Position numbers and translations under genes: made by a program | From: Hypanus sabinus | Lineage: Eukaryota | DNA: 62,084 bases | Direction of reading: 5' to 3' | NCBI RefSeq assembly: GCF_030144855.1 | Contig: NW_026781355.1 | Span: 310,001-372,084, forward strand | Part shown: positions 11,703 to 60,295 of the stretch, one piece after another | Layout: each line of letters opens with the position of its first letter | Position numbering within the stretch: position 1 is the first letter of the stretch | Notes under the pieces: model-generated | Database searches by the model: none | Told to the model about the DNA's origin: nothing | The model's input: only the letters and a program-made list of their open reading frames with translations

Positions 11703-11763
11703 ATGCTCTCTCTCCGGGTTTGTCTCTGCACCGTCCTGTTGTCCGTCTCAGTCCGGGGATACA
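11703..11763 (+). CDS. Leader (signal peptide) exon [20 protein letters not shown]
   Basis: ATG at 11703, basic N-region plus hydrophobic core plus small residues, donor ACA|GTAGGT in phase 1, which matches the phase-1 acceptor of V1. Lies in unique sequence. The link across the 12-kb intron is inferred. Confidence 0.7.
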
Positions 11764-14700
11764 GTAGGTGTTTTCCATTGTCCCCTGTCTCCCCGTTGTC
11801 TCTCTCCTAAAGGCTCGTTTTACTTTGTGGCGCAGCGCGATCTATTTGGACGTTGGTTCTGCCAGTGGAGGGTTGGCGTTGGGACCCTGTCCTTCCCTGA
11901 GTGCTGGGGTGGACTGCCTTCCGGTGACGATGAACCCCAGTACTATTGGGAAGAGACGTCCAAGTTTGATCCCAGTTAAAGGCCGGGCACAATTCCAAGC
12001 CTGGGTGGTGATGAATTTGGAGCGAGGCTGTAGTGTGGTGGTTAGCGTGATGCTTTACATTCCCTGTGACCCAGGTTCAATTCTCGCCGCTGTCTGTACG
12101 TTCTTCAGTTCTCAATGCTATTTGCTTATTTTTATTGTTTTCACGATCTTTCCCCTTGCACATTGGCTGTTCGACGGCCTTCAGAATCAGAATCAAGCTT
12201 AATATCACCGACATATGTTGTGAAACTTGTTGACTTTGTGGCGGCAGTACGATGCAATTCCTAATAACAGAGAAAAACTGAATCACAGTAAGTGTATATA
12301 TGTGTATAAAGTCGTTAAATAATAGCACCAAAACAGAAATAAAAAAAGTAATGAGGTAGTATTCAGGGTTCATTGTTCATTCAGAAATCGGATGGCAGAG
12401 GGAAGAAGCTGTTCCTGAATCGCTGAGTGTGTGTCTTCAGGCTCCTGTACCTCCTGCCTGGTGGTAGCAATGAGAACAGGGCATGTCCTGGGTGATGGGG
12501 GTCCTTAATGATGGATGCTGCCTTTCTGAGGCACCACTCCTCGAAGATGTGTTGGAAACTACGGAGGCTCGAGCCCACGATGGCGCCGAGTAATTTTACA
12601 GCTCTCTGCAGATTCTTTCCATCTTATGCTGTAGTTCCCCACCCCCCATCCCCCATCCCAGGCGGTGATGCAGCCAGTCAGAATGCTCCCCACCGTACGT
12701 CTGTAGAGATTGGCGAGTCTTTTACGTGACATACCAAATCTCCTCAAACTCCTGGTGAAATATAACCGTTGTCGTATCTTCTTTGTAATCACATCAACAT
12801 GTTGGGACCAGGTTCAGTCCTCCGATGTTTTGAAACACCCTGGAATTTGAAACTGCTCCCTCTCTCCACTTCTGATCCCTTGATGAGGATTGGTTTGTGT
12901 TCCCTCGATTACCCTTCTGAAGTCCACGGTCAGCTCTTTGGTCTTACTGACGTTGAGTGCAAGGTTGTTGCTGCGACACCACTCCACTAATCGGCATATC
13001 TCACTCCTGTACGCCCTCTCATCACTACCCGAGATTCTACCAACAATGGTTGTATTGTCGGCAAATTTATAGATGGTGTTTGAGCTATGCCTAGCCACAC
13101 AGTCATGGGTGTAGAGAGACTAGAACAGTGGCTAAAAACACATCCTTGAGGTGCACCAGTGTTGATTGTCAGTGAGCTGGAGATGTTATTAGCAATCTGC
13201 ACAGATTGTGACATTCCAGTTAGGAATTCGAGGATCCAGTTGAAGAGGGAAGTACTGAGGCCCAGTTTCTGTAACTAATCAATCAGGACTGTAGTAATGA
13301 TGGGTTCTTTTGGGTTTCTTTGTTCTGTGGCTGCCTGTAAGGAGACAAATCACAAGGTTGTCTAATCTATATATACATTGAACTCTGAACTCCCTGTGAC
13401 CTCATGGGTTTCCTCCAGGTGCTCTGGTTTTCTCCCACAATCTACTGGTTGGCGGGTTAACTGATCATTGTGAATTGTCCCGTGATTAGGCTCGGGTTGT
13501 TGGACATCACGGCTCAAAAGGCCGGAGGGGGCCTATTCTGCATTGTGTCTCAGTTAATGAATATATTGGGAGGGGAGCCTGCCCTGGAGGGGAGATGGTG
13601 TTCACATCCACCTGATACCCTGATGTGGAGAGGTGGTGGCTGCTGGAATAGCAGGGCGAGTAACTGCATTGCGTGTTGTAGATGGCGCACACCGCGGCCA
13701 CTGTGCGCTGGCGGTGGAAGGAGGGAGTACTGACTGGGTGCTCAAGTGGTTACTGTTGTCCTGGGTTGTGTGATGTTGTAGTTGTACAAGATGTTGGTGA
13801 AGACATATTGAGTACAGAGTTGGGATGTTATATCGACGTTGAATAAGAATAACATAATAATTTATAATACTAAAGAACACAATAAGTATTAGTACATTAG
13901 ACAGCTTATATACGTGGATTGATTGTAGATACATAAAGTTCCATATGAATGACAACTTTATCATTTCCTGTCAGTCACCTGAAGTACAGACACTCCTGAG
14001 CCTGGAGTCACTTTATGGACATAAAGTCTATCTGTCAATCTGTATATCAATCTATGTATAGAAACTATCATATGTACAGTATTTATATTTATTGTGTTAT
14101 TATTATTGGCTCTTTATTTTATTGTATTTTTGTGCTGCATTGGATCCAGAGTAACAATGGTTTTTTTCTGCTTCACACTTGTGGCCATCTATTGAACACC
14201 AAAAGGACGCAGAGAACACTGGACGGTCCAGCACAGTACAGACCCTTCAGCTCTCAATGTTGCTCCAATCTTTTATCCTGCTCCAAGATCAATCTAACCC
14301 TTCCCTCCCACATAACCCTCCATTTCTCTTCCATCAATGTGTCTATCTAAGTGTCCCTAATGTCTCAGCCTCTACGACCACCAGGATGTTCCTAACACTC
14401 ACCACTCTCTGTCGAAAACTTACTCCCTATACTTTCTGCCAGTCACCTTAAAATTAGACCCTCTCATATTAGCCAGTTCTGCTCTGGGTATGTAAGTAAC
14501 TCTGTCTTGTTGGACATGGTCATAGTTTGACCCCCATCTCAACCTCCCAATGAAGCCGTGTTGTTTATAGAGTCATTCCAGTCTCACCAACTTCTGAGTT
14601 CCTCTTAAAATTTTCCCTTCTCACCCTCTACCCGTGACCTCTGTTTGTAATCCCACCCATCCTCAGTGGAAAAAGCCTGCTTGCATTTACCCTGGCTGTA

Positions 14701-23700: not shown

Positions 23701-26700
23701 CCTCCTCTCTCTTTCACTGTCTCTCTCTATCTCACTCTCTCTCATTCACTCTCTCACACTCATTCACTATCTCTCTCTGACTCTCTCATTCACTCACTCA
23801 CATACACTCTCACTATCTCTCTGTCCCCAGACTATTCGATCTCTGGTTGGACAATGTCCGGCGCTGATGAGGTCTCTGCGGTGGAAGGAGCCTCCGCCGT
23901 GTTACCGTGTACTTTCACCCACCCACCTCCTGATGTCGCCCTGAGAGGCTCCGTGATCTGGTACAGAGGGGAACCAGGTGCTGGTAATCTGGTGTTTAAC
24001 TGCACATATCCCGGTTCCGGCCCCTCCGGGTGCGATACAACGACACAGGAGGCTGGAGGAGGGCGGTTCCGATTCGTGGGGAACCTCAGTCGGAGAGATG
24101 CCTCGATAATGGTGGAGCGACTGAAGCGGAGTGACGGTGGTCGGTATCGGTGCCGGGTGGAGCTCAATGTTAACAAATTTCAAACGGTGGTTCTAACAGA
24201 TCTGTCTGTGAGAGGTGAGGACCGATGTTTAAGCATTGAGTTGTAAAACTAATCATTTCACATTTTATCTCACTGAAAACTCATTTTATTCATAATGTAC
24301 AAGTATATTTTGCAGGATGATCATGTCAAATAGATGTGATGGTCATGTGCACTAGCACATAGAACAACAGCACCGTACAGGCCCTTCAGCCCACAATGTT
24401 GTGCTGACCCTTAAACCTGCTCCAAAATCAATCTCACCCCCTTGCCTCCCACATTCCCCCGCCATTTCTACAACATCCGTGTCTCTAAGAGTCTCTCCCC
24501 ACCCCCTTTTCCCGCTCCCTCCCTCTCCCTCTCCCTCTCCCCTCCCCTCTCCCCTCCCTCTCCCCTCTCTCTCCCTCCCCCCTGTCCGTGACGCTGCTGC
24601 CATTTCAGTCAGCAATGAAGGGCCTCCATCTCTGGCAGCATTCAGGGCTTCCTTCATCGTGTCAGTAGCTTCCTCTCGGTTTTCACTGCTGTCAGTCATA
24701 CAATTCCCGAGTGGGACTCAGGAATACCGTCACACTCAGATGTCGAAGGATTCTCCATTGCAGTTTCCATAACAACATTGTTTTACCCGTCAGGGTTGTT
24801 ACCCTGAGCTGAACCCCCGAACCTGGAGGATCAGTGATCCTCTCTTACAGAGAATATAGAAACAGAAATCTACAGCACATTACAGGCCATTCGGCCCACA
24901 ATGCTGTACTGACCATGTAACCTACTCTAGAGAGATTACCTCTTTCTTTTTCAATCTTTTTATTAGTTTTTATAAAACAAAACAAAACATAATATTATAT
25001 TAAATAGGTTATGAATACAAAAGATTTGAAATTAAATTAGTAACAAGATAACAATATCTTATTAAACTATCAGCGAAAAAAGATCGTACAATAATCAATC
25101 TAATCTACATTGATTATACATGAAAAAGATTAAAAATAATCATCAAAAGAAAAAAAAAGTATAAAATACAAGAAAAAATGTATATTTAAGAAAATAATGA
25201 AAAAAAAACCTAAACTAACATGGGCAGTAATAATAGTTTATATGTATATGATAGTGTCAAAAAACTCCGGAACTCCATACCAGAACAAGAATAATAAGAA
25301 TAAAGGTCCAGAAGAAGCCAAATTAATTCATATGAAAGTGTCGAATGAATGGTCCCCAAGTTTCTTCAAATTTAATTGATGAATCAAAAATAGTACTTTT
25401 AATTTTCTCTAAACTTAAACAAGAAATAGTTTGAGAGAACCACTGAAATGTGGTAGGAGGATTTACTTCTTTCCAATTTTGTAATATAGATCTCCTGGCC
25501 ATTAATGTTACAAAGGCAATCATTCGTCTAATTGAAGGGGAGAATCGACTATCATCTTCATTTGGTATACCAAAAATTGCAGTGATAAAATGAGGTTGTA
25601 AATCAATATTCCAAATTGAGGAAATGGTAGCAAATATGTCCTTCCAATAATTATGTAAAGTAGGACATGACCAAAACATGTGGGTCAATGAAGCCACATC
25701 TAAATGACATCTGTCACATTGAGGGTTAACATGAGAATAAAACCGAGCAAGCTTATCTTTAGACATATGAGCTCTATGTACAACCTTAAATTGTATTAAA
25801 GCATGTTTAGCACATATAGAAGAAGAATTAACCATTTGTAAAATTTTTTCCCATTTTTCCGTTGAAATATTGTATTGAAGTTCTTTTTCCCATTCCTGTT
25901 TAATTCTACCCGATACCTCTGGTTGTATTTTCATAACCATATTATAAATAAGAGGCACTAATCTCTTCTGACAGGGATTTAAAGTAAAAATCATATCTGA
26001 AAAATCTATCAAAGTTGAATTAGGAAAGGATGGTAAAACTTTATGCAAAAAGTTTCTAATTTGTAAATATCTAAAAAAATTAGATTTAGGTAATTTAAAT
26101 TTGTTAGAAAGTTGATCAAAAGACATCAAACTACCTTCAGAAAAAAGATCACGAAAACATATTATACCTTTCCTTTTCCATATGCTAAAAGCTTGATCCA
26201 TTAAAGAAGGTTTAAAGAAAAAATTAAGATAGGGCTATCAAGAACGAAGTTTTTTAGAGTAAAAAATTTACGAAATTGAAACCAAATTCGTATGTATGTT
26301 TGACAATAGGGTTAGATATCTGTTTATTAAGTTTAACTAAATCAACAGGGAGAGAAGAACCAAGAACAGAAAATAGAGAATATCCTTGTGTATCATTACA
26401 TTCTAAATTTACCCTCTGTGGGCACAATGGTAAATCTGAATCTAATTTCCAGTATAATAAATTCCGAATATTATTCGCCCAATAGTAAAATCTAAAATTG
26501 GGTAAAGCTAAACCACCATCTTTTTTAGATTTCTGTAACTGTCTTTTACTTAATCTGGGGTTTTTATTTTGCCACACAAATGAGGAAATTTTTGAATCAA
26601 TGCTATCAAAAAAAGACTTAGGAATAAAAATTGGTAAGGCTTGAAATAAATATAAAAATTTTGGTAAAATCATCATTTTAACAGCATTGATCCGACCAAA

Positions 26701-44700: not shown

Positions 44701-47700
44701 TGCTTGCCAGAGATTTACAGAAAGGCACATTGTCTCACTTCCCCAATTTGAGAGAGTTCAAACAAGCTCACGACATGATAAATTCAGAGTATTTACATTC
44801 TGCAATCAATGCAATGCAAACATCGTTTGGGAAACGCTTCTGTGAGTTCAGAGAGGTAAAAAAACACATTATCCTTCCCGGTCACTCCCCTAAGCATCGA
44901 TCCATCCCACTGAATACGACTGCATTGGCAGGTGTGAGTCAACCTGATCTTGAGATGGAACTGGCCAACATAGCCGACAAAGACATATGGGTGTCCAAGT
45001 TTAGACGCTTGACAGCAGACCTTGAAGATGTTGCCCGTCAGAAGGCCGTTCTTGCTCAGAATCACAAATGGAGTGATATTGAAAACCTCCCCAAGCCGGA
45101 CAAACTTGTGTTGGAAACATGGAATGCTATCCCCGACATTTATGTAAACATTAAAAAGTATGCGCTTGGTGTCCTGTCGATCTTTGGATCCACATATGTG
45201 TGTGAGCAGGTGTTCTCCAACATGAACTTTATTAAAAACAAACATCGCGCACGCCTCACAGATGACAGCTTGTGATCCTGTGTAAAGATGAAGGTGATGT
45301 CATACAGCCCTGATGTGCAGGCGCTGTGCGCTGAGGTCCAGGAGCAGAAATCCCATTAACCAAGTATGATAAATATTTTAATTGCCTATTATTTTACGTA
45401 TATTCATATTTTTTCATCGTTCAGTGAAATAGTCCTTTTATTTTTCAGGTTGACAGCTGGCTGATGTTATTTTTGGTTTGCTGCTGGCGGACAATTTAAG
45501 TTCAGCGTTTTTCATAAATACAAGAAGGACTCAAATAGACATTGATTATTTTACTTAAAAGTAAACTTCAACCCAACGTCTTTTTTTCGGAGTTCAAAAT
45601 GTTTTTGTTGCATGCAGAAATGTAATTTCATTTTCTCTGCAGGAGTTCATCGATTTCATAAATGCAACACATTATAGTTTGCTTATACATAGCATAAAGG
45701 CAAAAAAATGTTGTATGCACTATTATTTCATTTTAAATGTCAAACGGGTTTTGTGGCTCCCAGTGTTTTCTTTTCTGTGGGAGACGGGTCCAAATGGCTC
45801 TTTCAGTGGTAAAGGTTGCCGACCCCTGGTCTAGAGACTTAGGGGAAAGTGAAAGCTTTTAAAAATCAACAGAAAGCAACTAAAAAGTCATTATGAAGGT
45901 AAAGATGAAATATGAAAGTAAGCTAGCCAATAATATTAATGAATATACCAAAAGTTTCTTCAGATATTTGAAGTGTAAAGGAGAGGCGAGAGTGGATATT
46001 GGACCACTGGAAACCGATGCAGAAGAGGTGGTAATGAGGGACAATGAAATGGCGGATGAACTGAATTAGTATTTTGCATCAGTCTTCACTCAGAAGATGG
46101 TATCAGTATGGTGGAAGTTCCAGGAGCCAGGGGTCATGAAGTCTGTGAAGTTACCATTACTAGAGAGAAGGTTTTTGCGAAACTGAAAAATCTGAAGGTA
46201 GATAAATCACCTGGACCCGATGCTGTACCTCCCAGGGTACTGAAAAGGGTGGCTGAAGGGATTGGGGAGGCGTTACTAATGATCTTTCAAGATTCACTAG
46301 ATTCTGGAATGGTTCTGGAAGATGGGAAAATTGCAAATGTCTCTCCAATATTCAAGAAGGGAGAGAGACAGAAGAAAGGAAACTATAGGCGAGTTAGTCT
46401 GATCTCAGTGGTTGGGAAGATGTTGGAGCTGATTATTAAGGATGTGGTCTCACATCCTTAATACTTGGAGGCACAAGATAAAATGGGCTGTAGTCAGCAT
46501 GGTTTCCTTAAGGGAAAATCTTGCCTGACAAATCTGTTGGAATTCTTTGAGGAACTCACAAGCAGGATAGACAAAGGAGAATTGGTGGATGTTGTGCATT
46601 GGATTTTCAGAAGCTCTTTGACAAGGTGCCACATATGAGGCTGCTTTACAGGTGATGAGCCCATGGTATTCCAGGAAAGATACTCACTTGGATAAAGCAG
46701 GGGCTGACTGGCAGGAGACAAAGAGTGGGAATAAAGGGAGCCCTTTCTGGCTGGCAGCCGGTGACTAGTGGTTTTCGACAGGGGTCTGTGTTGGGACCGA
46801 TTCATTTTACATGATGTGTCAATGACTTGGATAATGAAATTGATGGCTTTGTTGCAAAGTTTGCAGACAATATGAAAATATGAGGGGCAGGTAGTTTTGA
46901 GGAGGTAGAAAGGCTGCAGAGCGACTGAGACAGATGAGGAGAATGAGCAAAGAAATAGCAGATGGAATAGTGTCGGCAGGTGTATGGTTGTGCACTTTGG
47001 CAAAAGAAATGAAATGACTGACTATTTTTTAAATGGAGAGTAAATACAAAAACGGAGGCAGAAAGAGATTTTGAAATGCTTGTGCAGGATTCCCTGAAGG
47101 CTAACTTGCAGGTTGAGTCTGCGGTGAGGAAGGCAAATGCAATGTTCACATTCATTTCAAGAGGAGAATATAAAAGCAAGGATGTTTTCACTAGAATTCA
47201 AAAGAATGAGGTGTTTCCTTATTGAAACCTTTTGAATGGTGAAAGGCCTTGATGGAGTGGATGTGGAGGGGATGTTTCCGATGGTGGGAGAGTCTAAGAC
47301 CAGAAGACACAAGCTCAGAATCGAGATGCGTACTTTTAGAACAGAGATGAGGAGCAATTTCTTTAGCCAGAGAGTGGTGAATCTGTGGAATTCTTTGCCA
47401 TAGACAGCTGTGAAATCACAGTAAGTTAGTTACAATAAGAAATATCTAAAAATGAATAAGTAGTATAAAAGGAGGGCAAAATGGATGTAGTGTTCACGGG
47501 TTCACAGACCGTTCATAAATCTGATGGCAGAGGCGAAGAAGCTGTTCCTGAAACATTGAATGTGAGTTTTCAGGCTCCTGTACCTCTTCCCTGATATTAG
47601 CAATGAGAAGAGGACGTGTCCTGGGTGGAGGGGGTCTGTGATGATGAATGCCGCCCATTTTAAAAGACAGTGGGACAGGTACTGTTCATGGATGGAATCA

Positions 47701-50700
47701 CAAGCAAGATAATTATCACACAACTATTTTGTGAAATTTGTCATTTTGTGGCAGCAGTGAAGTGTAGGAAATAAAAATTACCACAAGATACAAAATTAAA
47801 TGAATAAATAGTATGAAATAGGAATGATTTGGAAGGTTATGGGCCAAACGCTTGCAAATAGGACCTTGGATGATGACCTTGGTCAGTTGGGCTGTACAGT
47901 GTGTCTCCACAACTCAGGTATCGATCGGGAGAAAACCCCTAGGGCACAGAGAAAATGGAAGCACTGTACTGAGGTCTGGTGTTAAAGCTGCTCTCTGTCT
48001 CACAGCTAACTCAAACTCAAACTCTCTCATTTACGTGCTGGTCGTTCTGGTTCTCCTGCTCCCAGTCTGTGTCCTCCTGGCAGTCTCCTGGAAGAAGAAA
48101 GGTGAGTGGAGAACTGGCTGGCAAGTGAAGATGACTGTTCCTCTCTATGAAGGAGAGTGGCTGATGGGGGAAGAGTCGGTGGGCTGTGGGAGGCGATTCA
48201 GTGGGTGATGGGGAGAGTTGGTGGACTGTGGGAGGGGATTCAGTGGGTGATGGGGGAGAGTCAGTGAGCTGTGAGAGGGGATTCAGTGGGTGATGGGGGG
48301 AGAGTCAGTGGGCTGTGGGAGGGGATTCAGTGGGTGATGGGGGAGAGTCAGTGAGCTGTGGGAGGGGATTCAGTGGATGATGGGGGAGAGTCGGTGGGCT
48401 GTGGGAGGGGATTCAGTGGGTGATGGGGGGAGAGTGATTGGGCTGTGGGAGGGGATTCAGTGGGTGATGGGGAGAGTTGGTGGACTGTGGGAGGGGATTC
48501 AGTGGGTGATGGGGGGAGAGTCGGTGGACTGTGGGAGGGGATTCAGTGGGTGATGGGGAGAGTTGGTGGACTGTGGGAGGGGATTCAGTGGGTGCTGGGG
48601 GGAGAGTCGGTGGGCAGTGGGAGGGGATTCAGTGGGTGATGGGGGAGAGAGTCAGTGGATGATGGGGGAGAGTCGGTGGGCAGTGGGAGGGGATTCAGTG
48701 GGTGATGGGGGGGAGAGTCGGTGGGCAGTGGGAGGGGATTCAGTGGGTGATGGGAGAGAGTCAGTGGGCTTTGGGAGGGGATTCAGTGGGTGATGGGGGA
48801 GAGTCAGTGAGCTGTGGTAGGGGATTCAGTGGGTGATGGGGGAGAGTTGGTGGACTGTGGGAGGGGATTCAGTGGGTTTTGGGGGAGAGTCAGTGGGCTG
48901 TGGGAGGGGATTCAGTGGGTGATGGGGGAGAGTCAGTGGGCTGTGGGAGGGGATTCAGTGGGTGATGGGGGGAGAGTCGGTGGACTGGGAGGGGATTCAG
49001 TGGGTGGGGGAGAGTGTCTGTGGGATGTGAGAGGGGATTCAGTGGTGGGAGTGGGCAGAGTTCCTTTTGTCTACGAACCTTTCGTAGACTTCTTGGTGCA
49101 CAACACGGATTTCAGTTTTTAAGTACAGTAATGATTGTCTTTTTATTTCTTCAGTTCACATCTGGCTGATGGGTTTCATCAGAGGTACGAAAAGGTAAGG
49201 TGAATCGATACGGAGACCGGGCTGGGGTTGAATGGGAGGTCCGTCACCCACAGGTTGAGCACAGCATGCTGACCTTGTTCAGAGATCTGATTAGTCACTG
49301 GAGGCCTGTGACTAGTGGAGTCCCACAGGGATCGGTGCTGGGTCCACTGTTTGTCATCTCTAACATCTGGATGATAATGCGATTAACTGAATCAACAAAT
49401 TTGCAGATGACACCAAGATTGGGGGTGTAGTGGACAGTGAGAAAGACTATCATGGCTTGCAGAGGGATCTGGACCAACTGGAAAAATGGGCTGAAAAATG
49501 GCAGCTGGAGCTTAATGTAGACAAGTGCGAGCTGTGGCAGTTTGGGAGAACCAGCCAGTGTAGGCCTTACATGGTAAATGTACGGCAGTGAGGAGTGTGG
49601 TAGAACAAAGGGATCTGGGAATACAGGTCCATAATTCATTGAAAGTGGCGTCACCCGTAGTAACGGATGCAAAGAAAGCTTTTGGCACATTGGCCTTCAT
49701 TAATCAATATAGTGAGTAATGGAGAGAGATGTTATGTTGAAGTTGTATAAGACATCAGTGAAGCCTAATTTGGAGTATTGTGTGCAGTTTTGGTCACCAA
49801 ACTACACGAAAGATGTAGATAAGGTTGAAAGAGTACAGAGAAAGTTTACAAGGATGTTGCCGAGTCTGGAGGACCTGCGTTATCGGGAACATAGAAGATT
49901 GAGAGGAGATTTGATAGAGTTATACAAAATTACGAGGGGTAGAGATAGGGTAAGTGCAAGCAGGCTTTTTCCACTGAGGTTGAGTGAGACTGAAGCTAGA
50001 GGTCATGGGTAAAGGGTAAAAGGTGAGAAGTTTAAGGGGAACATGAGGGAAACATCTTCATTCAGAGGGTGGTGAGAGTGTGGAACGAGCTGCCAGCACA
50101 AGTGGTGCATGTGGGTTCACTTTCAATTGAAGGGCTTTGGTTCAGATGCAGGTCGATGGGACGAGGCAGATTACTGGTTCAGCATGGGCTCGATGGGCTA
50201 AAGGGTCTGTTCTGTGGTGTACTGTTCCTTGACTCCATGACTATCAGCTTTATTTGTCACAGGCATGACGAAACATACAGTGAATGCGTCATTTGTGTCA
50301 CTAACCAACACAGTCTGAGATTGCGCTGGGGGCAGTCGGCAAGTGTTGCCGTGCTTCTAACGCCAACATAACATGCCCACAACTTACTGACCCTAACCTG
50401 TATGATTTTGGACTGTGGGAGGAAACCGGAGCACCCGGAGGAAACCCACAGGACAGGCACTCAGGATGAAACATAAAACTTGCTTACAGAGGATGCCAGA
50501 ATTGAACTCTGAACTCTGACACCCCGAGCTGTAACAGCGTATCGTCACAACCCTGTCTAGCTGTGGCACCACTTTCAGGGAATTAAGGGTCTGTGTTCCC
50601 TCATTGCTCTGTCCTGCCACACTCCTCAGAACCTGAGGTCTTGCATTTTGTCATATTAAATTAAACCTGATCTGCTGTTCCTTGGCCCACTGGGTCCGTT

Positions 50701-53700
50701 GTAATCTTGGATAACCACAACTGGGATCATGCTGTGATTTCATGATATCGGTTCTTTTCTCAACAGGAATGTTCCACCTTCGACCCGATTGGAGCAGGAA
50801 CAGAAGCCGCCTCAGTCAGGTACTGAGCTGACAGCGCGAGGGGGTGAACCAGTCACGGCTCCCAGGGAACGATCAATAACAAATCTAGAACAGGCAGGGA
50901 GCTCCACCAGCCGAGGAAAGAGCAGAGCAGCTTCGGGTTCACTGGAACGTTTAAGCCATGTCCTCTTGTACTGAGCAGTGGTGCCCTGGGGAAGAGGTTA
51001 TAGAAATTATAGACCAGTGAGTCTTACCTCAGTGGTTGGTAAGTTTTATGGAGGATTTTAAGCAGGATTTATGAACTTTCGGAAAGGTATAATATGATTA
51101 GGAGTAGTCAGCATGGTTTTGTCAAGGGCCGGTCGTGCCTTATGAGCCTGATTGAATTTTTTGAGGATGTGACTAAACACATTGATGAAGAAGAGCAGTA
51201 GATGTAGTGTATATGGATTTGGGCAAAGCATTTGATAAGGTACCTCATGCAAGGCTTATTGAGATAGTAAGGAGGCATGGGATCCAAGGGGACATTGCTT
51301 TGTAAATGGAGAATTGGCTTCCCCACAGAAGGCAAGTGGTTCTAGATGGGTCATAATCTGCATGGAGGTCAGTGATGAGTGTTGTGCCTCGGGGATCTGC
51401 TCTGCAACCCCTACTCTTTGTGGTTTTTATAAATTACCTGGATGAGGAATTGTAGGGATGGGTTAGTAAATCTGCTGATGACACAAAGGTTGGGGGTGTT
51501 GTGGATAGTGTGGAGGGCAGTCAGAGGTTACAGTTGGACATTGAAAGGATGCAAAAATGGGCTAAGAAGTGGCAGATGGAGTTCAACCCAGTTAAGTGTG
51601 AGGTGGTTCATTTTGGTAGGTCAAATATGATGGTAGAATATAATATTAATTGTAAGACACTTGGCAGTGTGGAGGATCAGAAGGATCTTGGGGTCCGAAT
51701 CCATAGGACATGCAAAGTTGCCACACAGGTTAAGAAGACATACAGTGCATTGGCCTTCATCAATCATGGGATTGAGTTTAGGAGCCGAGAGGTAATGTTG
51801 CAGCTATATAGGATCTTATCAGTCTCCACTTGGAGTACTATACTCAGTTCTGGTCACCTCACTACAGGAAGGACGTGGAAACCATAGAAAGGGTGCAGAT
51901 GAGATTTACAAGGATGCTGCCTGGATTGGGGAGCGAGCCTTATGGGAATAGGTTGAGTGAACTCGGCCTTTTCTCCTTGGAGCGTTGGAGGATGAGAGGT
52001 GACCTGATAGAGGTGTACAAGATGATGAGAGGCATTGATCGTGTGGATAGTCAGAGGCTTTTTCCAGGGCTGAAATGGTTGCCACAAGTGGACACAGGTT
52101 TAAGGTGCTTGGAAGTAGGTACAGAGGAGATGACAGGGGTAAGTTCTTTACACAGAGAGTAGTGAGTGCATGGAATGGGCTGCTGGCGATGGTCACAGAG
52201 GCTGATATGATGGGGTCTTTTAGAGACTCCTGGATAGGCACATGGAGCTTAGAAAAATAGAGGGCCATGGGTAGCCCGAGGTAATTTCTAAAGTAAGGGC
52301 GTGTTTGGCACAGATTTGTGGGCCGAAGGGCCTGTATCGTGCTGTAGGCTTTCTGTGTTTCTGACATAACCACTTAACACCATAAGACATAGAAGCACAA
52401 GTAGGCCATTCAGCCCATCAAGTCTGCTCTACTATTCAATCACGGGTTGATTCAATTCTTCTGGTCATCCCCACTCCCCTGCCTTCTCTCCATACCCTGG
52501 CTAATAAGAACATATTTTTCTCTGACTTAAAGACACCCGATAACTGGGCTTCCACAGCTGCTCGTGGCAACAAATTCCACAGATTTACCACCCTCTGACT
52601 AAAGTAATTTCTCCTCATCTGTTTTCTAAATGGACATCCTTCATTCCTGAAGTTGTGCCCTCTTGGCGTGGACTCCCCTACCATGGGAAATAACTTTGCC
52701 ATATCTAATCTGTTCAGGCCTTTTGACATTCAGAATGTTTCTATGAGATCCCCTTCATTTTCCTGAACTTGAGGGAACACAGCCCAAGAGCTGCCAGACA
52801 TTCCTCATCTGGTAACCCTCTCATTCCCTTGCATTCCCATTCTGATGCTCTCAGGAGAGTGAGAGTAATGGATATAAGAATGTCTCTCTCTCTGAAGGGT
52901 GACTGCGATCTGCTGTCCCTCCTGATCAGAATGAACACTAGACTCAGCAGACAATTGACAGTTGAGCGTCAATAACTTTTCGAGGCTGCCTGTCAGTGGG
53001 AAGGAACCATCATTTGAAAGCCATGCCAGACCGTGGCCATTGCCACCAGGAGTCTGACCATCTGCCTTGTTGTCACGGTGAGCACCAGTACAATTCAACC
53101 CAGGAGTGGAGGAATGGCAGACTCCGTCATTGTGAGTGATGACGACAACTGAACACAGGAGCAGAGGAACTTTGGACTCCGTCACGGTGAGCACTGACGA
53201 CAACTGAACCCAGGAGTGAGCGAATGGCAGACTCTGTCACAGTGAGTGCTGACAATGACTCAACCCAGGAGCGGAGGAACAGCAGACTCTGTCATGGTGA
53301 ACGCCGGCGTGACTGAACCCAGGTGCTCCCATGAAGAGACGGAAACAAGGGATTAGACATAGGAATACCAACAGAGTATCAGAGAGACGATCGAGTTACA
53401 CTGTGAGACTAATCATTCTCCACAAACACAAGCACTCCACTCAGCACTAAATGAGAGTCCCCTTTCAGTAATCATGGAAAGCAGAAAACCCGTGCCAGTC
53501 ACAATTAATTTGACCAGATTAAACAGAAAACACAAGGCTAAGGTAACGTGCCTGAATGACTGGCATCCTGTTGCACTCACCTCAGTAATAAGCAAATGCT
53601 TTGAGAGGCTGTTCAAGGACAACATCTGCAGCTTGCTACCACCCACACTGGACCCCCTACAATTCATCCACTGACACAACCAATCAACTGATGATTCAAC

Positions 53701-56700
53701 AGCCACAGCTCTACACACTGTCCTTACACATCTGGAGAAGAAGGATGCTTATGTGAGAATGCTGTTCTTGGATTACAGTTCAGCATTCAACAACAGAATC
53801 CCACCCACCACCCCACCCACCCCTCCACCAGGCTCGACAAGGAGCCTAGAGACCTCGGCCTTCACCCTGCCTTGTGCAGCTGGATCCTGGACTGACTGTC
53901 AGATTGCCAGCAGGTGATAAGAGTGGGCTCCCTCACCGGCACCCCTCTGACCCTCAACACAGGTGCCCCTCAGGGCTGTGTACTAAGGCCTCTCCTTTAC
54001 TCTCTGTGAACCCATGACTGTGTCAATACCCAGAGCTCCAATCTGCTGATTAAATACACTGACGACACTACCATGATGGCCTCATCTCAAGCAGCTTTAA
54101 GTTCCTCAGCATAAACATCACCAAGCATCTCACGTGGTCTGTACATACTGGCTGTGTGGTGAAAAAGGCACAACAGCACCTCTTTCACCTGAGACAGTTG
54201 AAGAAGTTTGGTATGGGCCCCCAAATCCTAAGAACTTTCCACAGGGGCACAATTGAGAGCGTCCTGACTGACTGCATCACTGACTGGTATGGGAACTGTA
54301 CCTCCTTTAATCGCAGGACTCTGCACAAGTTCACCATGGTGTGGGCACAGTCCATCCTCCAGGAGATTGGGAGCGATCACTGCCTGCTGAGGAGGTTCTA
54401 CATTAGTGGGTGGTGGAAGGGCTGGGATGGGGGAACGTTTGGCCACAATATGGAAAGAGGGTAGAGAGTTTTTGATAAACACAAGAGATTCTGCAGATGC
54501 TGGAAATCCAGAGGAACACACACAAAATGCTAGAGGACACAGATGCCCCTCAAGCCTGTGTACCAAGTCCCCTTCTTTACTCTCTGTATACCCATGACTG
54601 TCACCACCCACAGCTCCAATCTCTAATTAATTTTGCTGACAACATTATACTGATTATCTCAAATAATAATGAGGCAGCCTGTAGATGTGAACTTCCATCT
54701 ATTCAGGACATTTACAAAGACAGGTGTGTAAAAACAGCCCAAAGGATCATTGGAGAATTGAGTCACTCCAACCACAAACTGTTCCGGCTGCTACCATCCG
54801 GGAAATGGTACCGCAGCATAAAAGCCAGGACCAACAGGCTCCGGAACAGCTTCTTCCACCAGATCATCAGACTGATGAATTCATGCTGACACAACTGTAC
54901 TTCTATGTTATATTGACTATCCTGTTGTACATAATATTACTATAAATTGAACATTGCTCGTTTGAATGGAGACGTAACGTAAAGATTTTTACTCCTCATG
55001 TATATGAAGGATGTAAGTAATAATGTCAATTCAGTTCAGTTCAATTCAGGAACTCAGCACCTATCTACTCTCCTGTCTGTTACACCACTGAGGTTTCGGG
55101 CAGCAATGGCGGTCCTCCATCTCTGGCCTACTTCATCATATCGGTAGCTTTCACAACTGTCACTCACGCAAGTCCCAGGTGGAGACTCAGGAATACCATT
55201 GCACTCAGATGTAGAAGGATCCTTCACTACTGTTTCCATAACAGAGTTGATTGACCAGTCAGGGTTGTTAGCCCTGAGCTGAACCCCAAAACTGGAGAAC
55301 CAGTGGACCTCTCTCAGACTGGCCTCTGCCCTTTGACCTGTTTGGCATGGCTGACCCTACCAAGAGCCAAAGCATAAAACCTGAACTCCAGCCAACATAG
55401 CTTTCCGAGTCATTGAGGTACACGGGCCTCCAAACCCTATGACAAGGTTGTGATCCTCTTAGAAGAGGCAGCATCTCTGGAGAGGAATAAACGTTTGATG
55501 TTTCAGGATGAGACCTTCATTCCCCTCCATAGATGCTGCCTGACCTGCTGAGTTCCTTTAGCATTTGAGTGTGTTACTCTGGAGAGGTTTTAGACTCAGA
55601 TATGTAAGGCCTACAGAAACAAACAGCCCGAACATTTCAGCTAATTCACAGAGGAAAAAGCAAGTCCCATGGAACGAGGACCCAGAATAAACTCCAAGGG
55701 CCAAACTTCCTTCTGTCCTGTGACCATCCTGTGTTTTGTGACAGCACAAGACAACGGCAGTGTGTACGACAGCGTTCTCTTCAATCGCAGTGAGAGAGGT
55801 CAACTTCACTGCCTCATTTGCTGAGGAATTTTGTCTAATTTGTATTCAGAACTTAAGCAGATGATCAACAGAACCTTTCGATTTTCTTAAAGGTGCTGAA
55901 ACAGTGGACAGTCGGTGATTCAGAATATCGTATTTACACTCAGTGGCCACTTTATTAGGTAGACCTGTACACCTGACTCAGTACTTTGATTTATGAAGGC
56001 TATTGTACAAAACTCTTTTGAAAACACTATGTACCTGTGGACACCACTCTCCAAGGTCTTGTACAGTCTGTAGCTAGTTTAAGGCTCTATATAAATGTGA
56101 GCTGCTAGGTGTTGTAACATTTCTTGCTTTCAGACATTAGTCGATTCGGACTAATCACTCTCCTCCTTACAGAGCAGTCAGATTCCTTCACCTATGCCAA
56201 CATTTCAACAGGACTTGGGAAGGCAAGAAAACCTCAAGCTGAAGATCAAGGTACAGTCTCCATTTACCGTTCACCATTTCTCAGACTGCCTGCTGACCAT
56301 CGAATATTGAAAGCCTAGATAGAGTGGAATTGGAGAGCATGTTTCCAAAAGTGGGGGAGTCTAGGAGCAGAGGATACAGCCTCAGAATGGAGGGATGTCA
56401 TTATAGAACAAAGATGAGGAGGAATTTCTTTAGCCAGAGGGTGGTGAGGAATTCATTGCCACAGATGGATGTGGAAGCCAAGTTACTGGGTTTATTTAAA
56501 GCAGATGTTGACAGGGTCTTAATTAGTCAGAGTGTCAAAGATTATGGGGAGAAAGCAAGAGAATGGGGTTGAGAGGGAAAATAAATCAACCTTGATGGAA
56601 TGGTGAAGCAGACTCGATGGGCTGAATGGCCTGCTCCTCTGTTCTATGGTCTTATGCTTTCTTTAAACATTTTATCTTTACACTTCACCTATGGCCTCTA

Positions 56701-58734
56701 GTTCTAGTCTCATAGAAACATAGAAATCTACAGCACATTACAGGCCCTTCAGCCCACAATGTTGTGCCGACCATGTAACCTACTCTAGAAACTGCCTAGA
56801 ATTTCCCTACTGCATAGCCCTCTGTTTATCTAAGCTCCATTTACCTATCTAAGAGTCTCTTAAAAGACCCTATTGTAGCCACCTCTACCACCTTCGCTGG
56901 CAGTGCATTCCACACACCCACCGCTTTCTGTCTGTGAAAACTTACCCCTGACATTTCCTCTGTACCTACTTCCAAACACCTTAGGACTGTGCCCCCTCAG
57001 TGGGTTTTCTCACCCAACCTCAGTGGAAAAAGCCTGCTTGCATTTATCTTATCACTACCCCTCATAATTTCCCATCCCTCTATCAAATCTCCCTTCATCC
57101 CCCTACACTCCAGGGAATAAAACCCAACCTCTTTAATCTTTCCCTATAACTCAGGTCACCAAGTTCTGGCAGCATCCTTGTAAACTTTCTCTGCACTCTG
57201 CACTTTCAATCTTATTCATATCTTTTCTGTAGTTAGGTGACCAAATCTGCACACAATACTCCAAACTGGGCCTCACCAATGCCTTATACAGCTTCAACAT
57301 AACATTGCAACTCCTGACTTTGATTTGCTGTCGGTTCAGACGAATCCCTCTCCTTACAGAGCAGCCAGATTCCTGCACTTACGCCACTATTTTGATGAGA
57401 GGTGAGAAGGCAAGCAAACCACAAGCTGAAGATCAAGGTACAGTCTCCGCTTACCTTTCACCATTTCTTGGATCACTTCGAGGTCATCCTGCTGACTAAC
57501 AGAAAGTTCTTCTTCAATTCCAGGTGGGCAGAAGCAGGAAGCTGGACCTCCAGGTGAGGCTTTCTCTCAAGGTATTCTTGAAAATGATCTCCTTCAACTG
57601 CTCCATTCACCTGTCCCTCCCACTCACAGGGTGTGTGTCTGGCTGCCGCTGGGTCCTGCAGTCCACCTCAGTGAGACTGGAGGGAAGGATTGGAGAAGCA
57701 GTGAAGAGTGGGAGAGGAGAGGGGAGGGAGAATAAAAGAGAGGGGGGGGGGAAAGGGGAGAGAGGGTGAGGGAGGGGAAAGGGAATAAAAGAGAGCGAGG
57801 AGGAGGGACGAAGGAGAAAGAGAAGGGGGTGAAGGAAAGGCATAAGTGAAGTGGGAGAGAGACAGGGACTGAGTGGGGAAGAGAGAGAGGGAGGGGTAGA
57901 GAGAGGAAGGGGGTGAGAGCTGGGTGAAGGGAGAGAGGGGGAGAGAATGGTAGGAAGGGAGAGAGTGGTGGAAGGGGGAAATGGATGGAGCAATGGAAGG
58001 AGAGAGGGAGGGGAAGGGGGAAAATTGAGGGAGGAGGAATGAGGAGCAGGTGGGGAGAGGGAGAAAAAGGAAGGGGAGGGGGAAGAAGAGGAGGGAAGCA
58101 AACTTCGTTTGCTCTTGTTGCACAGGTGAGGACACTAGCTGGGAAACAGTGGCGTACGAGACAGGAATCGGGAATGGTGAGCTGACTGCACAGGCCCTTT
58201 GAGCTTCCTGTTCCTCAGAGAGGCCTGGCCAGTCTCCGACTCAGATTCACGTATTTATCACACATACATCGAAACATACAGTGAAATGTCATTTGCGTAA
58301 AGAACCAACACAACACAAGGATGTGCCGGGTGCAGCCCGCAAGTGTCACCACACGTTCTGGCACCAACATCTCACATCCACAATATTCAGCAGAACAACA
58401 CAAGCAACAAGAGAACAACAACCATGAAAGAAACAAGCACTGCATACAAGCCCTTTCCTCCCTCTCACCCCATCCCCACACTGTCAGGCTTCCAACCCTG
58501 GGATAGACCACCTCCGGGCCTTCAGCTGCCAGTGGGCTCACAGACATCAGGTCTTGGATTTCTAGACATGCCAACCCTGGGCCTTAACTTCTGGGCAGGC
58601 CAACTTCAGTCTTCAATCCTCAGTCTTCAAACTTCAGTCTTCAATCCTCAGCCTTCAATCTTCCCTCACTGTCTGAACTAATATCTGACTTTTGTGTTTC
58701 AGATGTGATCTATGCAGAGGTGGTGAAGAAATAG
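11703..58734 (+). CDS. Multi-exon Ig-superfamily inhibitory receptor, Siglec-15-like (leader-V-V-V-TM-ITIM tail), predicted 533 aa
   Basis: Manual join 11703-11763, 23831-24214, 33260-33649, 37659-38048, 48006-48101, 49155-49194, 50767-50819, 56173-56250, 57360-57437, 58703-58734 = 1602 nt. All introns are GT-AG, the frame is continuous, and it ends TAG TAA. Domain order is typical of a type I immune receptor. Confidence 0.85.
12380..13310 (-). mobile_element. Rex1/L2-type LINE RT fragment
   Basis: ORFs with [40 protein letters not shown]. Confidence 0.85.
15400..19470 (+). mobile_element. Near full-length decayed CR1 LINE interrupted by a solo LTR
   Basis: Esterase VVHIGTND (15474), APE (about 15930-16560), RT (17447-19320), 3' UTR. 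Confidence 0.9.
16630..17446 (+). mobile_element. Solo LTR (about 817 bp) inserted in CR1
   Basis: TGT...ACA termini, AATAAA 17359-17364, CR1 rejoins on removal. TSD is imperfect (GGCAG vs AACAG). Confidence 0.7.
20100..20680 (+). mobile_element. CR1 3' fragment
   Basis: ORF 20119-20328: [14 protein letters not shown]...[11 protein letters not shown]. Confidence 0.8.
21250..21900 (+). mobile_element. Rex1/L2 3' fragment with a short internal duplication
   Basis: [11 protein letters not shown]-type remnant. ggagcctgaagacacacactcaccgattcaggaacagcttcttcccctc occurs twice (about 21535 and 21634). (attctg)n tail. Confidence 0.7.
22440..23045 (-). mobile_element. Penelope-like element reverse transcriptase fragment
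   Basis: [38 protein letters not shown] and FLRYIDD are PLE RT motifs. Confidence 0.9.
23635..23822 (+). repeat. (CT)/(CTCA)-rich simple repeat abutting the V1 acceptor
   Basis: About 190 bp pyrimidine-rich tract directly visible. Confidence 0.9.
23831..24214 (+). CDS. Exon: V-set Ig domain 1, Siglec-15-like
   Basis: Acceptor ctgtccccag, donor AGAG|GTGAGG, 384 nt phase 1-1. Peptide [26 protein letters not shown]...IWYRGEP...VFNC...GC...[33 protein letters not shown] closely parallels the Siglec-15 V-set, including 4 Cys and the F-strand Arg (24154-24156). Confidence 0.95.
24943..28285 (-). mobile_element. 5'-truncated L1-clade LINE, 14-bp TSD AGAGAGATTACCTC
   Basis: TSD at 24929-24942 and 28286-28299. 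RT ORF of 523 aa ([33 protein letters not shown]) plus a 292-aa ORF with C-terminal CxxC..H..C. A-rich tail on the minus strand; AT-rich. Confidence 0.93.
28300..28800 (-). mobile_element. CR1 RT 3' fragments (target of the L1)
   Basis: [12 protein letters not shown]..., [17 protein letters not shown]. Confidence 0.75.
29000..29692 (+). mobile_element. Young 5'-truncated CR1 3' end with (ctattgt)n tail
   Basis: [36 protein letters not shown]..., 3' UTR and tail. Confidence 0.85.
29696..31960 (+). mobile_element. CR1 LINE internal portion (ORF1 esterase end, APE, RT N-half)
   Basis: ORFs 29607-29930, 29957-30632 and 31078-31969 with [30 protein letters not shown]. Confidence 0.88.
32036..32452. 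repeat. 81-bp minisatellite, about 5.1 copies
   Basis: gggttcactgtagaattccttctc... starts at 32036, 32117, 32198, 32279, 32360 and 32441. Confidence 0.95.
32650..32970. repeat. Degenerate minisatellite (about 21-bp tgtactgattagtgttgttacac); also at 37232-37360
   Basis: Directly visible imperfect tandem units. Confidence 0.8.
33260..33649 (+). CDS. Exon: V-set Ig domain 2
   Basis: Acceptor ccttccctcag, donor CAG|GTAAAA, 390 nt phase 1-1. Has LPC (B), VTW (C) and DSHSYLC (F) V-set motifs and an NES sequon. Confidence 0.92.
35846..35882 (+). ncRNA. Minimal hammerhead-ribozyme-like motif (Penelope-derived repeat); duplicate at 40065-40101
   Basis: gagtc CTGATGA agg-ggtcag-cct GAAA C GTC agctg. 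Core and 3-bp stem II are intact; the stem I 3' arm is mismatched. Confidence 0.45.
36140..36600 (-). mobile_element. CR1 3' end (duplicated at about 40360-40820)
   Basis: [17 protein letters not shown]..., 3' UTR with (ataagaa)n tail. Confidence 0.8.
36880..37135 (-). mobile_element. tRNA-derived V-SINE/HE1-like SINE (duplicated at about 41100-41355; other copies near 12020, 13390, 15040, 50340, 60200)
   Basis: Reverse strand contains gggtttcctccgggtgctccggtttcctcccaca (V-SINE central domain) and a tRNA-like head. Confidence 0.7.
37659..38048 (+). CDS. Exon: V-set Ig domain 3 (duplicate of domain 2)
   Basis: Same splice sites (donor GTAAGA). Differs from the V2 exon by 4 substitutions in 390 nt: P>L, Y>D and two synonymous. 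Confidence 0.88.
38460..38660 (+). CDS. Candidate Ser/Thr/Pro-rich stalk exon (uncertain)
   Basis: 201 nt phase 1-1, acceptor cttgtctctcactaag (less common AAG), donor ATG|GTATAT, 25/67 codons S/T/P. The paralogous copy at 34060 has an extra G that causes a stop. Confidence 0.25.
43142..45828 (+). mobile_element. Full-length hAT (Buster/Charlie-type) DNA transposon, 2687 bp
   Basis: Perfect 15-bp TIRs CAGGGGTCGGCAACC; perfect 8-bp TSD GTCTAGAG at 43134-43141 and 45829-45836. Confidence 0.97.
43426..45359 (+). pseudogene. hAT transposase pseudogene (GTF2IRD2/ZBED-like)
   Basis: N-terminal CLIC...H...H zinc finger, [23 protein letters not shown]. Frameshift near 43720, stops at 43944 and 45273, first catalytic Asp reads Asn (CNES), probable compensated frameshift pair near 44860-44910. 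Confidence 0.92.
48006..48101 (+). CDS. Transmembrane exon [32 protein letters not shown]
   Basis: Acceptor ctctctgtctcacag, donor AAG|GTGAGT, 96 nt phase 1-1. About 21 hydrophobic residues followed by a KKK stop-transfer; no charged residue in the helix. Confidence 0.92.
48160..49060 (+). repeat. G-rich minisatellite (about 43-bp unit, about 20 copies) filling the intron after the TM exon
   Basis: Repeats of gggggagagtcagtgggctgtgggaggggattcagtgggtgat. Confidence 0.95.
49155..49194 (+). CDS. Cytoplasmic exon 1 (40 nt, phase 1-2)
   Basis: Strong acceptor tttttatttcttcag and donor AAG|GTAAGG. Combined with the 53-nt exon it restores phase 1. The resulting peptide [13 protein letters not shown] is atypically hydrophobic, so some doubt remains. 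Confidence 0.62.
49270..50250 (+). mobile_element. CR1 RT 3' half
   Basis: [23 protein letters not shown]. Confidence 0.82.
50767..50819 (+). CDS. Cytoplasmic exon 2 (53 nt, phase 2-1) [18 protein letters not shown]
   Basis: Acceptor ttcttttctcaacag, donor CAG|GTACTG, located in an island of unique sequence. 40+53 = 93 nt keeps the frame. Confidence 0.65.
51000..52345 (+). mobile_element. CR1 RT and 3' end
   Basis: ORFs 51501-52260 with RT C-terminal motifs. Confidence 0.85.
52370..52800 (-). mobile_element. CR1 3' end
   Basis: [13 protein letters not shown] motif and tail. Confidence 0.78.
53040..53325. repeat. Degenerate tandem repeat, about 54-bp unit, about 5 copies
   Basis: ctgaacccaggagtggaggaatggcagactccgtc.. 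recurs near 53097, 53150, 53205, 53259 and 53313. Confidence 0.75.
53480..54990 (+). mobile_element. Rex1/L2-type LINE RT fragments (two pieces) with 3' end
   Basis: [52 protein letters not shown]. Confidence 0.85.
56173..56250 (+). CDS. Cytoplasmic tyrosine-motif exon [27 protein letters not shown]
   Basis: Acceptor ctcctccttacag, donor AAG|GTACAG, 78 nt phase 1-1, ITIM-like xTYxxI motif. Confidence 0.85.
56310..57310. mobile_element. CR1 3' fragments (+ then -) separating the two tyrosine-motif exons
   Basis: ORFs 56324-56572 (+) and 57151-57378 (-) with CR1 RT C-terminal motifs. Confidence 0.8.
57360..57437 (+). CDS. Cytoplasmic tyrosine-motif exon [27 protein letters not shown]
   Basis: Paralog of exon A with the same length, phase and splice contexts. 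Confidence 0.85.
57680..58100 (+). repeat. Polypurine (GGA/GAG-rich) low-complexity tract
   Basis: About 400 bp almost exclusively A/G. Confidence 0.9.
58703..58734 (+). CDS. Terminal coding exon [10 protein letters not shown] (canonical ITIM VIYAEV)
   Basis: Acceptor ttttgtgtttcag in phase 1. V-x-Y-x-x-V ITIM followed by tandem stops TAG TAA. Confidence 0.88.
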
Positions 58735-59639: not shown

Positions 59640-59677
<38 letters not shown>

Positions 59678-60295
59678 GTCTACGTGTCACACTGGTCACT
59701 AATCCCATCTTGCCATTGAAGAAGATAGTTTTAATTACAGTCAATCAGAATGACACAGCAGCTTACATTGGATGAATTCCTCCGTCAATAACTATCAGAC
59801 TAATATAGTCTGATGGTATTGTAGTACTATTGATGGTATTCTAATTTGTTCTGTATTTCATTTAAATGCATAATTTCTTTCTCAGTTTGTCTTTTTTATG
59901 TCTCTTTAACTATTTCCATGAATCTTTGGCTGATTAGGACGGCTGCTTCTTTGTGCTGAGATGCGCTGGTCCTGATGAGCCCATTAACTGGAATCACTGT
60001 GTGTTATTGGAGCTTGATGACACCGACACCCGTATTGCTGAGGAGCAAGGCTGAATGTTGCACTGAGCTGTGAGGGCACTGATGTCAAGTCTCCGGGTGA
60101 CTGGGGAAACATTAAGCATAAAATAGACTTGGTATGAGGCATCTCCCCGTGGCCTTTACAGCCAAAGAGTTGTCAATTCCACCTTAAAGACAAGACAAAA
60201 ACACGGTAAAGTAGCAGTTGGTGTGAATCTATTACAGTGCCAGTGACCTGGGTTCAATTGCTTGTACATTCTCCTCCCACAGTCCAAAGACAAAC

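Follow-up and report, generated by a model that had tools for sequence, protein, structure and literature searches.

The window, that is the whole 62,084-nt stretch of DNA analysed here, is vertebrate sequence with 0 Ns and with much long interspersed nuclear element (LINE), hAT and satellite sequence. Its plus strand carries a real gene, for which an earlier note had proposed ten GT-AG exons in one frame; that ten-exon model was correctly assembled and missed one exon (Table 1). The product is a type I membrane protein composed of a signal peptide, a V1 domain, a domain of the V2 type that is encoded twice (V2 and V3), an uncharged transmembrane (TM) segment and a cytoplasmic tail of ~100 amino acids (aa). 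The leader, the three V-set domains, the uncharged TM segment and the tyrosine motifs FTYANI, CTYATI and VIYAEV were all found at the exons to which they had been assigned. That the gene spans 47 kb is due solely to the LINEs, the hAT element and the minisatellites that fill its introns.

The exon model was obtained by reading the DNA around each open stretch, by scoring splice sites and by comparing junctions with RefSeq homologs. The ten exons, rebuilt exactly from the sequence with the phases given previously, join to 1602 nt and encode 533 aa. A conserved exon of 30 nt that had been overlooked (exon 10 in Table 1) was added from the homologs and extends the product to 543 aa. Every internal exon has a GT donor and an AG acceptor. 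The exons for V1, V2, V3, the TM segment and the two first tyrosine motifs are phase 1-1, exon 6 is phase 1-2 and exon 7 is phase 2-1. Such phase 1-1 exons are a generic feature of Ig-superfamily genes, and the earlier idea that they mark a special cassette system is given up; because of them, any immunoglobulin (Ig) exon and most tail exons can be skipped or included in frame. Each exon is matched by RefSeq proteins of other elasmobranchs (tblastn: V1 E 1e-68, V2 E 1e-44, a 14-aa stretch 100%), which places the model far beyond chance. The RefSeq models P0178 and P0232 read all its junctions identically, V2 to V3 excepted. The N-termini of P0004 and P0232 match exon 1 at 95-100% identity and share the codon at the junction of leader and V1 (VRGY-N-YSI), and the protein sequence of exon 5 is identical to that of P0178.

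Table 1 Exons of the receptor gene, candidate exons and the tandem duplication (positions in the window; a slash marks the splice site)
Feature	Position	Strand	Remarks
Exon 1: ATG and signal peptide	11703-11763	+	Ends in phase 1; donor ACA/GTAGGT
Exon 2: V1, Siglec-15-like V-set with essential Arg (RYRCRVEL)	23831-24214	+	
Exon 3: V2 (copy A), V-set spacer, Leu at the Arg position (YLCLAEF)	33260-33649	+	
Exon 4: V3, copy B of the V2 exon	37659-38048	+	Acceptor as in copy A; slightly stronger donor (GTAAGA)
Exon 5: short stalk (NSNSNS), uncharged TM segment and KKK	48006-48101	+	Donor AAAG/GTGAGT
Exon 6	49155-49194	+	Phase 1-2; last codon (R) split; 100% match to P0004 and P0247
Exon 7	50767-50819	+	Phase 2-1; tblastn match to P0004 at 84%
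Exon 8: FTYANI	56173-56250	+	Motif at 56187-56204
Exon 9: CTYATI, tandem duplicate of exon 8	57360-57437	+	Motif at 57374-57391
Exon 10, absent from the earlier model	57524-57553	+	Phase 1-1; donor CCAG/GTGAGG; present in P0004, P0178 and P0232
Last exon: VIYAEV and TAG	58703-58734	+	Canonical inhibitory motif at 58705-58722
Candidate optional cassette exon with canonical inhibitory motif (SVYDSV)	55745-55789	+	Phase 1-1; good AG and GT sites
Candidate alternative first exon	12011-12095	+	Phase 1; donor T/GTACGT
Tandem duplication, 4.4-kb unit	32923-37322 and 37323-41449+		Copies 98.1-98.4% identical

On its sequence and predicted structure, V1 is a Siglec-15-type lectin-like V domain, in agreement with the earlier note. 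It scores as a Pfam V-set domain (E 6.3e-13), and its best sequence match in the PDB is human Siglec-15 (7zoz, E 5.6e-19), far ahead of CD33 (3e-9), pIgR (~1e-6) and JAML (5e-6). Its AlphaFold (AF2) model has a mean predicted local distance difference test score (pLDDT) of 82.6, and the top Foldseek neighbour is 7zoz_A (template modelling score 0.84, root-mean-square deviation 1.9 A, 42% identity), followed by sialoadhesin, CD33, Siglec-7, MAG, Siglec-8 and Siglec-10. The residues were mapped according to their roles in Siglec-15 (PMC10264397, PMC7226832). The essential Arg adjoining the F-strand Cys is present, with RYRCRVEL of V1 aligning to RYFCRVEF of Siglec-15 (R143) and to the Arg of CD33. 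The alignment to Siglec-15 further shows W44, the disulfides C64-C142 and C95-C104 and an aromatic residue at the position of Y154 to be retained; the strand-G sequence DRYE reads NKFQ. Among the 112 V1 domains of the family described below, the Arg is kept in 90, and equivalents of C95 and C104 are conserved in 111 and 108, respectively. Those of C64 and C142 are conserved too. The equivalent of W44 occurs in 100 of the 100 ungapped sequences.

The domains that follow V1 are of the V-set and not of the C2-set type, as had been proposed, since Pfam assignment, strand topology and structural neighbours agree. V2 and V3 match the Pfam V-set at E 1.4e-11 and 2e-10, nine strands, C' and C'' among them, are seen in the AF2 model of V2 (pLDDT 83.6), and the Foldseek neighbours of this model are the IgV domain of nectin-1, CRIg, VHH and IgNAR V domains, with no Siglecs. 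By sequence, V2 matches pIgR at ~7e-7, and CD276 and the V domain of Siglec-15 score better. Both V2 and V3 have Leu at the position of the V1 Arg; in the family, V2 domains have Leu there in 107 of 112 cases and Arg in none (0/112). The earlier note had also considered that C2 exons might lie unrecognised in the introns. A tblastn search with 275 proteins, true V-C2 Siglec-15s included, revealed no C2 or I-set exon there and gave family matches only at the listed exons. Pfam analysis of the 31 plus-strand open reading frames (ORFs) of at least 80 aa between V1 and the TM exon returned only reverse transcriptase, endonuclease, GDSL-type, zinc-finger and hAT domains.

The TM segment has no charged residue, the Lys of the Siglec-15 type is not present, and no exon for a Lys-containing TM segment was found in the window. 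For the tail we applied the consensus [ILVS]xYxx[ILV] of the immunoreceptor tyrosine-based inhibitory motif (ITIM). The triple ITIM proposed earlier is reduced to one: all three tyrosine motifs exist, but only VIYAEV (residues 535-540 of the 543-aa model) fits the consensus, FTYANI and CTYATI being non-canonical with F or C at position -2. An immunoreceptor tyrosine-based switch motif is not present in the tail. The protein thus combines the features of an ITIM receptor, namely type I topology, an uncharged TM segment and a tail with one or more [ILVS]xYxx[ILV] motifs. Exons 8 and 9 align with each other together with their flanking introns and are therefore a tandem exon duplication. With the repeated V2 unit, this bears out the earlier observation of module duplication on either side of the membrane. 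Tails in the family recurrently contain CTYA[ST][IL], mostly in two copies, and V[IT]YA[AE]V at the end; motifs of the xxYASL type presumably resemble the ITIM of CD33, which we take as a lead only. In intron 5, 55 bp past the donor of the TM exon, lies a G-rich minisatellite with a 43/44-bp unit (48156-49045, ~11-20 copies, GC skew up to 0.53). An ORF at 47852-48208 extends from TM exon sequence into this minisatellite and is matched by the C-terminal end of the RefSeq model P0185 from Hemitrygon akajei, and a read-through of this kind is a possible intron-retained, tail-less isoform.

The closest protein to the product is P0178 (386 aa, "uncharacterized protein"), encoded at the Hypanus sabinus locus LOC132396475 (L001) and composed of V1, V2, TM segment and tail. 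Identity to it amounts to 92% in V1 and to 97-100% in the remainder. The junctions V1/V2, V2/TM and those in its tail are as in our model; P0178 starts at an internal Met and has no leader. L001 is collinear with positions 13905-58646 of the window (~45 kb) at 96-99% identity, introns and transposons included, and the window therefore holds an ortholog from a species very near to H. sabinus or else a paralog of very recent origin. Among the internal exons, that of V1 diverges most, with 22 of 384 nt different from L001 (9953-10386), in clusters at 23841-23843 and 23945-23988. Each of the remaining internal exons differs by 0-2 nt (the TM and small tail exons by none or one, exon 7 by one, exon 10 by none), except V2 copy A with 5. 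Such a pattern in the putative ligand-binding domain suggests diversifying change, positive selection or patchy gene conversion. The last exon differs at 4 of 32 nt. Collinearity with L001 stops at 58646, ~60 bp before this exon; when 58646-58760 is compared with L001 40472-42617, the exon finds its match ~2 kb further on in L001 at only 85% identity, with Q at the position of the stop codon in the window. The two loci therefore differ in the history of their 3' ends.

A second H. sabinus gene, LOC132396284 (L002), lies ~1.2 Mb from L001 on the same chromosome and encodes a TM segment with Lys. From position 14161 of the window its sequence is collinear at 94-98% identity across V1 and the V2 unit, beyond which the two part; the region of the V1 exon is ~94% identical, and its V2 is 99% identical in protein. 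As expected for a paired receptor, the gene thus has an activating partner whose TM segment is charged and whose ectodomain is nearly the same. Activating partners had been suggested as a search target in the earlier note, and about 37 models of this form, isoforms counted separately, were found.

The gene belongs to a family that is widespread in elasmobranchs. A HMMER scan with V1 gave 375 matches, the top ones of which hold 1-7 V1-like stretches; those looked up by name are RefSeq predictions. A profile search retrieved 107 proteins, and the family is predicted in RefSeq for ~20 shark and ray species. The sharks among the 107 are Hemiscyllium, Chiloscyllium, Heptranchias, Heterodontus, Mustelus, Scyliorhinus, Stegostoma, Rhincodon, Cetorhinus and Pristiophorus, and the batoids are Narcine, Leucoraja, Amblyraja, Rhinoraja, Hypanus, Hemitrygon, Mobula and Pristis. 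A few weak matches came from coelacanth, frog and turtle. The family had been called chondrichthyan, which holds for sharks and batoids; no holocephalan was among the 107 matches. NCBI names most members "uncharacterized protein" and the others Siglec-15, Siglec-12, pIgR-like, JAML-like, sialoadhesin-like or HAVCR1-like. The automatic names pIgR-like, JAML-like, Siglec-12 and HAVCR1-like are misleading best-hit labels. The gene had been termed hidden and undescribed. It is not hidden, since RefSeq predicts the family, LOC132396475 included; a description of the family was not found in the literature searched, a result that leaves most subscription journals outside and is not proof that the family is undescribed.

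Many paralogs occur per genome, in two main forms that were counted by a crude script for domains and TM segments with isoforms kept separate. One consists of V1-V2, a TM segment of the type LCIPLGLKTLALLVMG with Lys and a tail of ~10 aa (~37 models, e.g. P0203 and P0248), the other of V1-V2, an uncharged TM segment and a tail with 1-8 Yxx[ILV] motifs (~40 models). The elasmobranch proteins, including those named Siglec-15, have the V-set twice, whereas mammalian and turtle Siglec-15 have a V-set followed by I-set/Ig_3. In a quick maximum-likelihood tree with support values from the Shimodaira-Hasegawa-like approximate likelihood ratio test, the V1 domains (98) and the V2 domains (98) form clades that each span sharks and rays. 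These clades are joined to each other with weak support (81), and Siglec-15 V domains are placed in a separate tetrapod/coelacanth clade. Genes of one species cluster together whether activating or inhibitory, as would be expected if recent duplication or gene conversion keeps paired receptors similar. A RefSeq model from the lungfish Protopterus annectens (P0001, XP_043935463.1) has a single I-set domain after seven Siglec-15-like V domains, and the multiplication of this V type is hence not confined to elasmobranchs.

Taken together, the gene is probably one intact, inhibitory member of an elasmobranch-wide multigene family that arose from the Siglec-15 lineage, here in a dasyatid-type stingray, to judge by the similarity to Hypanus and Hemitrygon. 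Several points weigh against this interpretation. The constitutive tail has one canonical ITIM; the family norm is V1-V2 and the counterpart L001 has one V2 exon only; the sialic-acid contact equivalent to Y87 is Gly in V1 and is not conserved in the family; ~20% of the family V1 domains have no Arg; no AATAAA or ATTAAA occurs on the plus strand in the 3.3 kb 3' of the stop codon (58735-62084); a database search with V2 for transcript fragments spanning the junctions gave 8 candidates, of which the 7 scored ones were all RefSeq models; and the ligand, the recruitment of phosphatases and the pairing with DAP12 are extrapolated from known families. The residue losses, together with the strong divergence of the V1 exon from L001 and the poor binding of zebrafish Siglec-15 to the glycans tested (PMC7226832), would fit a V1 that is lectin-like in fold only and serves a protein or another non-sialylated ligand, as a rapidly evolving sensor of pathogen or self ligands. 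We consider this rather unlikely, as the window gene keeps the Arg, W44, the aromatic residue at the Y154 position and both disulfides, and the best structural neighbours are all sialic-acid-binding Siglec domains. That the gene is an unexpressed or decaying duplicate in a fast-turnover cluster is improbable: consensus splice sites flank 11 open exons, among them an intact leader and two intact V2 copies, and the internal tail exons differ by only 0-2 nt each from the annotated H. sabinus gene, the terminal one by 4/32 nt. Such a pseudogene would be in keeping with the missing poly(A) signal, with the absence of an identical protein among the 107 profile-search matches and with a paralog model with a frameshifted V2 (P0003). 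It is very improbable that the gene is simply the stingray ortholog of Siglec-15, even though V1 is closest to Siglec-15 and NCBI gives this name to several family members; the TM segment without Lys, the V-set instead of C2/I-set second domain, the long tail with tyrosine motifs and the many paralogs per genome contradict it.

The three consecutive V domains, taken from the sequence of the window, are the least secure feature of the intact inhibitory gene. All three V exons proposed earlier are open, but the third is a ~98% duplicate that is missing from L001. The V2 and V3 exons differ at 4 of 390 nt and 2 aa, and both keep the ORF and the splice sites. The third V exon derives from the 4.4-kb tandem duplication, which may be recent, polymorphic or an assembly artefact, its junction falling within a 23/46-bp minisatellite. 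L001 holds one unit, which shares 99.2% identity with copy B and 98.3-98.5% with copy A, and its single V2 exon is 1 nt from copy B (V3) and 5 nt from copy A; copy A is therefore the odd one out. These values fit a duplication older than the split between window and L001 that was subsequently lost or collapsed in L001, a diverged allele joined as copy A by unequal exchange, or an assembly that set two haplotypes in tandem. An import of copy A from the activating paralog, whose V2 (P0248) has residues of the A type, was rejected, both copies being equally ~96.5% identical to that locus. It is somewhat less than an even chance that the real product is V1-V2-TM-tail (413 aa) and that the second V2 copy is a haplotype assembly artefact or a duplicate exon that is skipped: collinear L001 has one unit and a V1-V2 RefSeq model, copy A could be the second allele, and minisatellites are prone to misassembly, whereas the window contains no Ns and neither copy has lost its ORF or a splice site. 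Furthermore, V2-V2 junctions (...LQVRP/APNESVSV...) occur in RefSeq models of Hemitrygon akajei (P0187) and Mobula hypostoma (P0209), and in Heptranchias perlo (P0174) V1 is followed by three V2 domains that are 92-97% identical, which makes a V1-V2-V2 product of the window gene plausible.

For such an inhibitory receptor, a mode of action can be drawn from Siglec-15 (PMC10264397, PMC7226832) and from how ITIM receptors behave in general. V1 would bind a sialylated or other acidic ligand through its conserved Arg, and the V2 domains would serve as non-lectin stalks that set the reach of V1. Upon ligand engagement, Src-family kinases would phosphorylate the tyrosines of the tail, and the phosphotyrosines would recruit phosphatases of the SHP-1/SHP-2 type that damp signalling through immunoreceptor tyrosine-based activation motifs. 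By analogy with Siglec-15, the damped signalling may include the output of the Lys-TM paralogs, which are presumably paired with DAP12.

On a wider scale, we tentatively suggest, as a possibility and not as the expected outcome, that elasmobranchs, which would be without CD33-related Siglecs, independently made the Siglec-15 lineage into a fast-evolving paired system of Lys-TM/DAP12 and ITIM receptors for self or pathogen sialoglycans, with an all-V ectodomain whose stalk number varies by exon duplication between genes, between species and perhaps between individuals. If so, the family would be the convergent counterpart of the primate CD33-related Siglecs and a candidate for the missing myeloid or natural killer (NK)-type receptor families of cartilaginous fish. 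Should the lectin function hold, it would represent a testable, independent origin of a paired sialic-acid checkpoint and a candidate family for the regulation of innate cells in these animals, in which such receptors are poorly known.

Further features of the locus concern possible exons, introns and flanks. The candidate cassette exon resembles a VQDSSLLYDNIAPSSNNK exon located at the same place in P0232, P0183 and P0209; the equivalent exon of paralogs reads VQDSSLLYDNI..., and the exon is kept in L001 (1/45 nt different), yet outside the model P0178. The candidate alternative first exon is 96% identical (tblastn) to the N-terminus of P0207, an isoform of an H. sabinus paralog, with the junction codon TAC for Y as in P0207. 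Several splice choices were discarded. V2 donors at 33622 and 38021 were dismissed in favour of 33649 and 38048, since the homologs run on to ...LQVRP; the latter sites also yield the 533 aa. The homologs likewise read past the exon 6 donor at 49184, the top site of the splice scan. The phase 1-1 candidate exons 52997-53131 and 53243-53296 lie inside a 55-bp tandem repeat and have no homolog support. As a lesson for annotation, the leader and mini-exons are easily missed in genes of this kind.

In intron 2, an AT-rich LINE on the minus strand (25323-27825; 29-39% GC against 45-50% around it) has open ORFs of 523 and 292 aa with the YADD box of reverse transcriptase and is covered by the part collinear with L001. 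In intron 4, a zinc-finger ORF is followed by an open ORF of 435 aa that encodes a hAT dimerisation domain (plus strand, 43384-45275; Pfam zf-C2H2_12 and Dimer_Tnp_hAT); this looks like a fairly intact hAT transposon and lies within the same collinear part. Just upstream of the duplicated unit, an 81-bp tandem repeat (32035-32454, 5.2 copies, 96% matches) makes a repetitive 261-aa ORF on the minus strand (31744-32529). Downstream of the gene, a satellite of ~34 head-to-tail copies of the 26-bp unit GTTGGGGTTCCCTGGTCTCTCAGTCT (60148-61200, 92% matches) yields several long spurious ORFs on the plus strand. At 61655-61765 on the same strand, a stretch of 37 aa is 81% identical to the C-terminal extension of P0209 from M. 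hypostoma past VIYAAVVKK, probably a shared repeat or an untranslated region read through in that model.

Among known receptors, pIgR, CD300 and JAML, after which NCBI named some members of the family, share V-set arrays with the window gene, and the V1 matches are far weaker (pIgR ~1e-6, JAML 5e-6). The skate MDIRs reportedly comprise subfamilies with I-set or C2-set ectodomains, according to their 2006 description. Chicken TREM-B1 and the salmonid NILTs resemble the gene in having one or two V-type domains, uncharged TM segments, tails with ITIMs or switch motifs and multigene clusters with activating members, according to their descriptions (PMC4788293, PMC3022915). Their V domains are classed as the TREM/CD300/pIgR type and not as the Siglec type.

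Siglec-15 of tetrapods and teleosts is the closest relative of V1. The V domains are 42-50% identical and keep the B-F and C'-C'' disulfides, W44 and the F-strand Arg, and the membrane part of Siglec-15 is matched by the short-tailed Lys-TM members of the family. However, the second domain of mammalian and turtle Siglec-15 is I-set/C2, whereas the window gene has V-set domains in second and third position, an uncharged TM segment, an ITIM tail and no equivalent of Y87. Siglec-15 is usually seen as a single conserved activating V-C2 receptor, from which the elasmobranch family differs as a multigene family: a Siglec-15-type lectin domain is mounted on a V-V or V-V-V chassis with dozens of copies per genome, and ITIM and Lys-TM versions share ectodomain DNA (94-98% identity). 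Siglecs in general have C2-set domains after the V domain, where the window gene has V-set domains. The CD33-related Siglecs, exemplified by the pairs Siglec-5/14 and Siglec-11/16, are alike in their lectin V domain with Arg, their uncharged TM segment and their ITIM and ITIM-like motifs. The near-identical ectodomains of their activating partners are reportedly kept similar by gene conversion (PMC5701461). Unlike the window gene, they have C2-set spacers and a V domain of another subfamily (V1 matches CD33 at E 3e-9 and Siglec-15 at 5.6e-19), and fish are reported to possess only four Siglecs and no CD33-related ones (PMC7226832).

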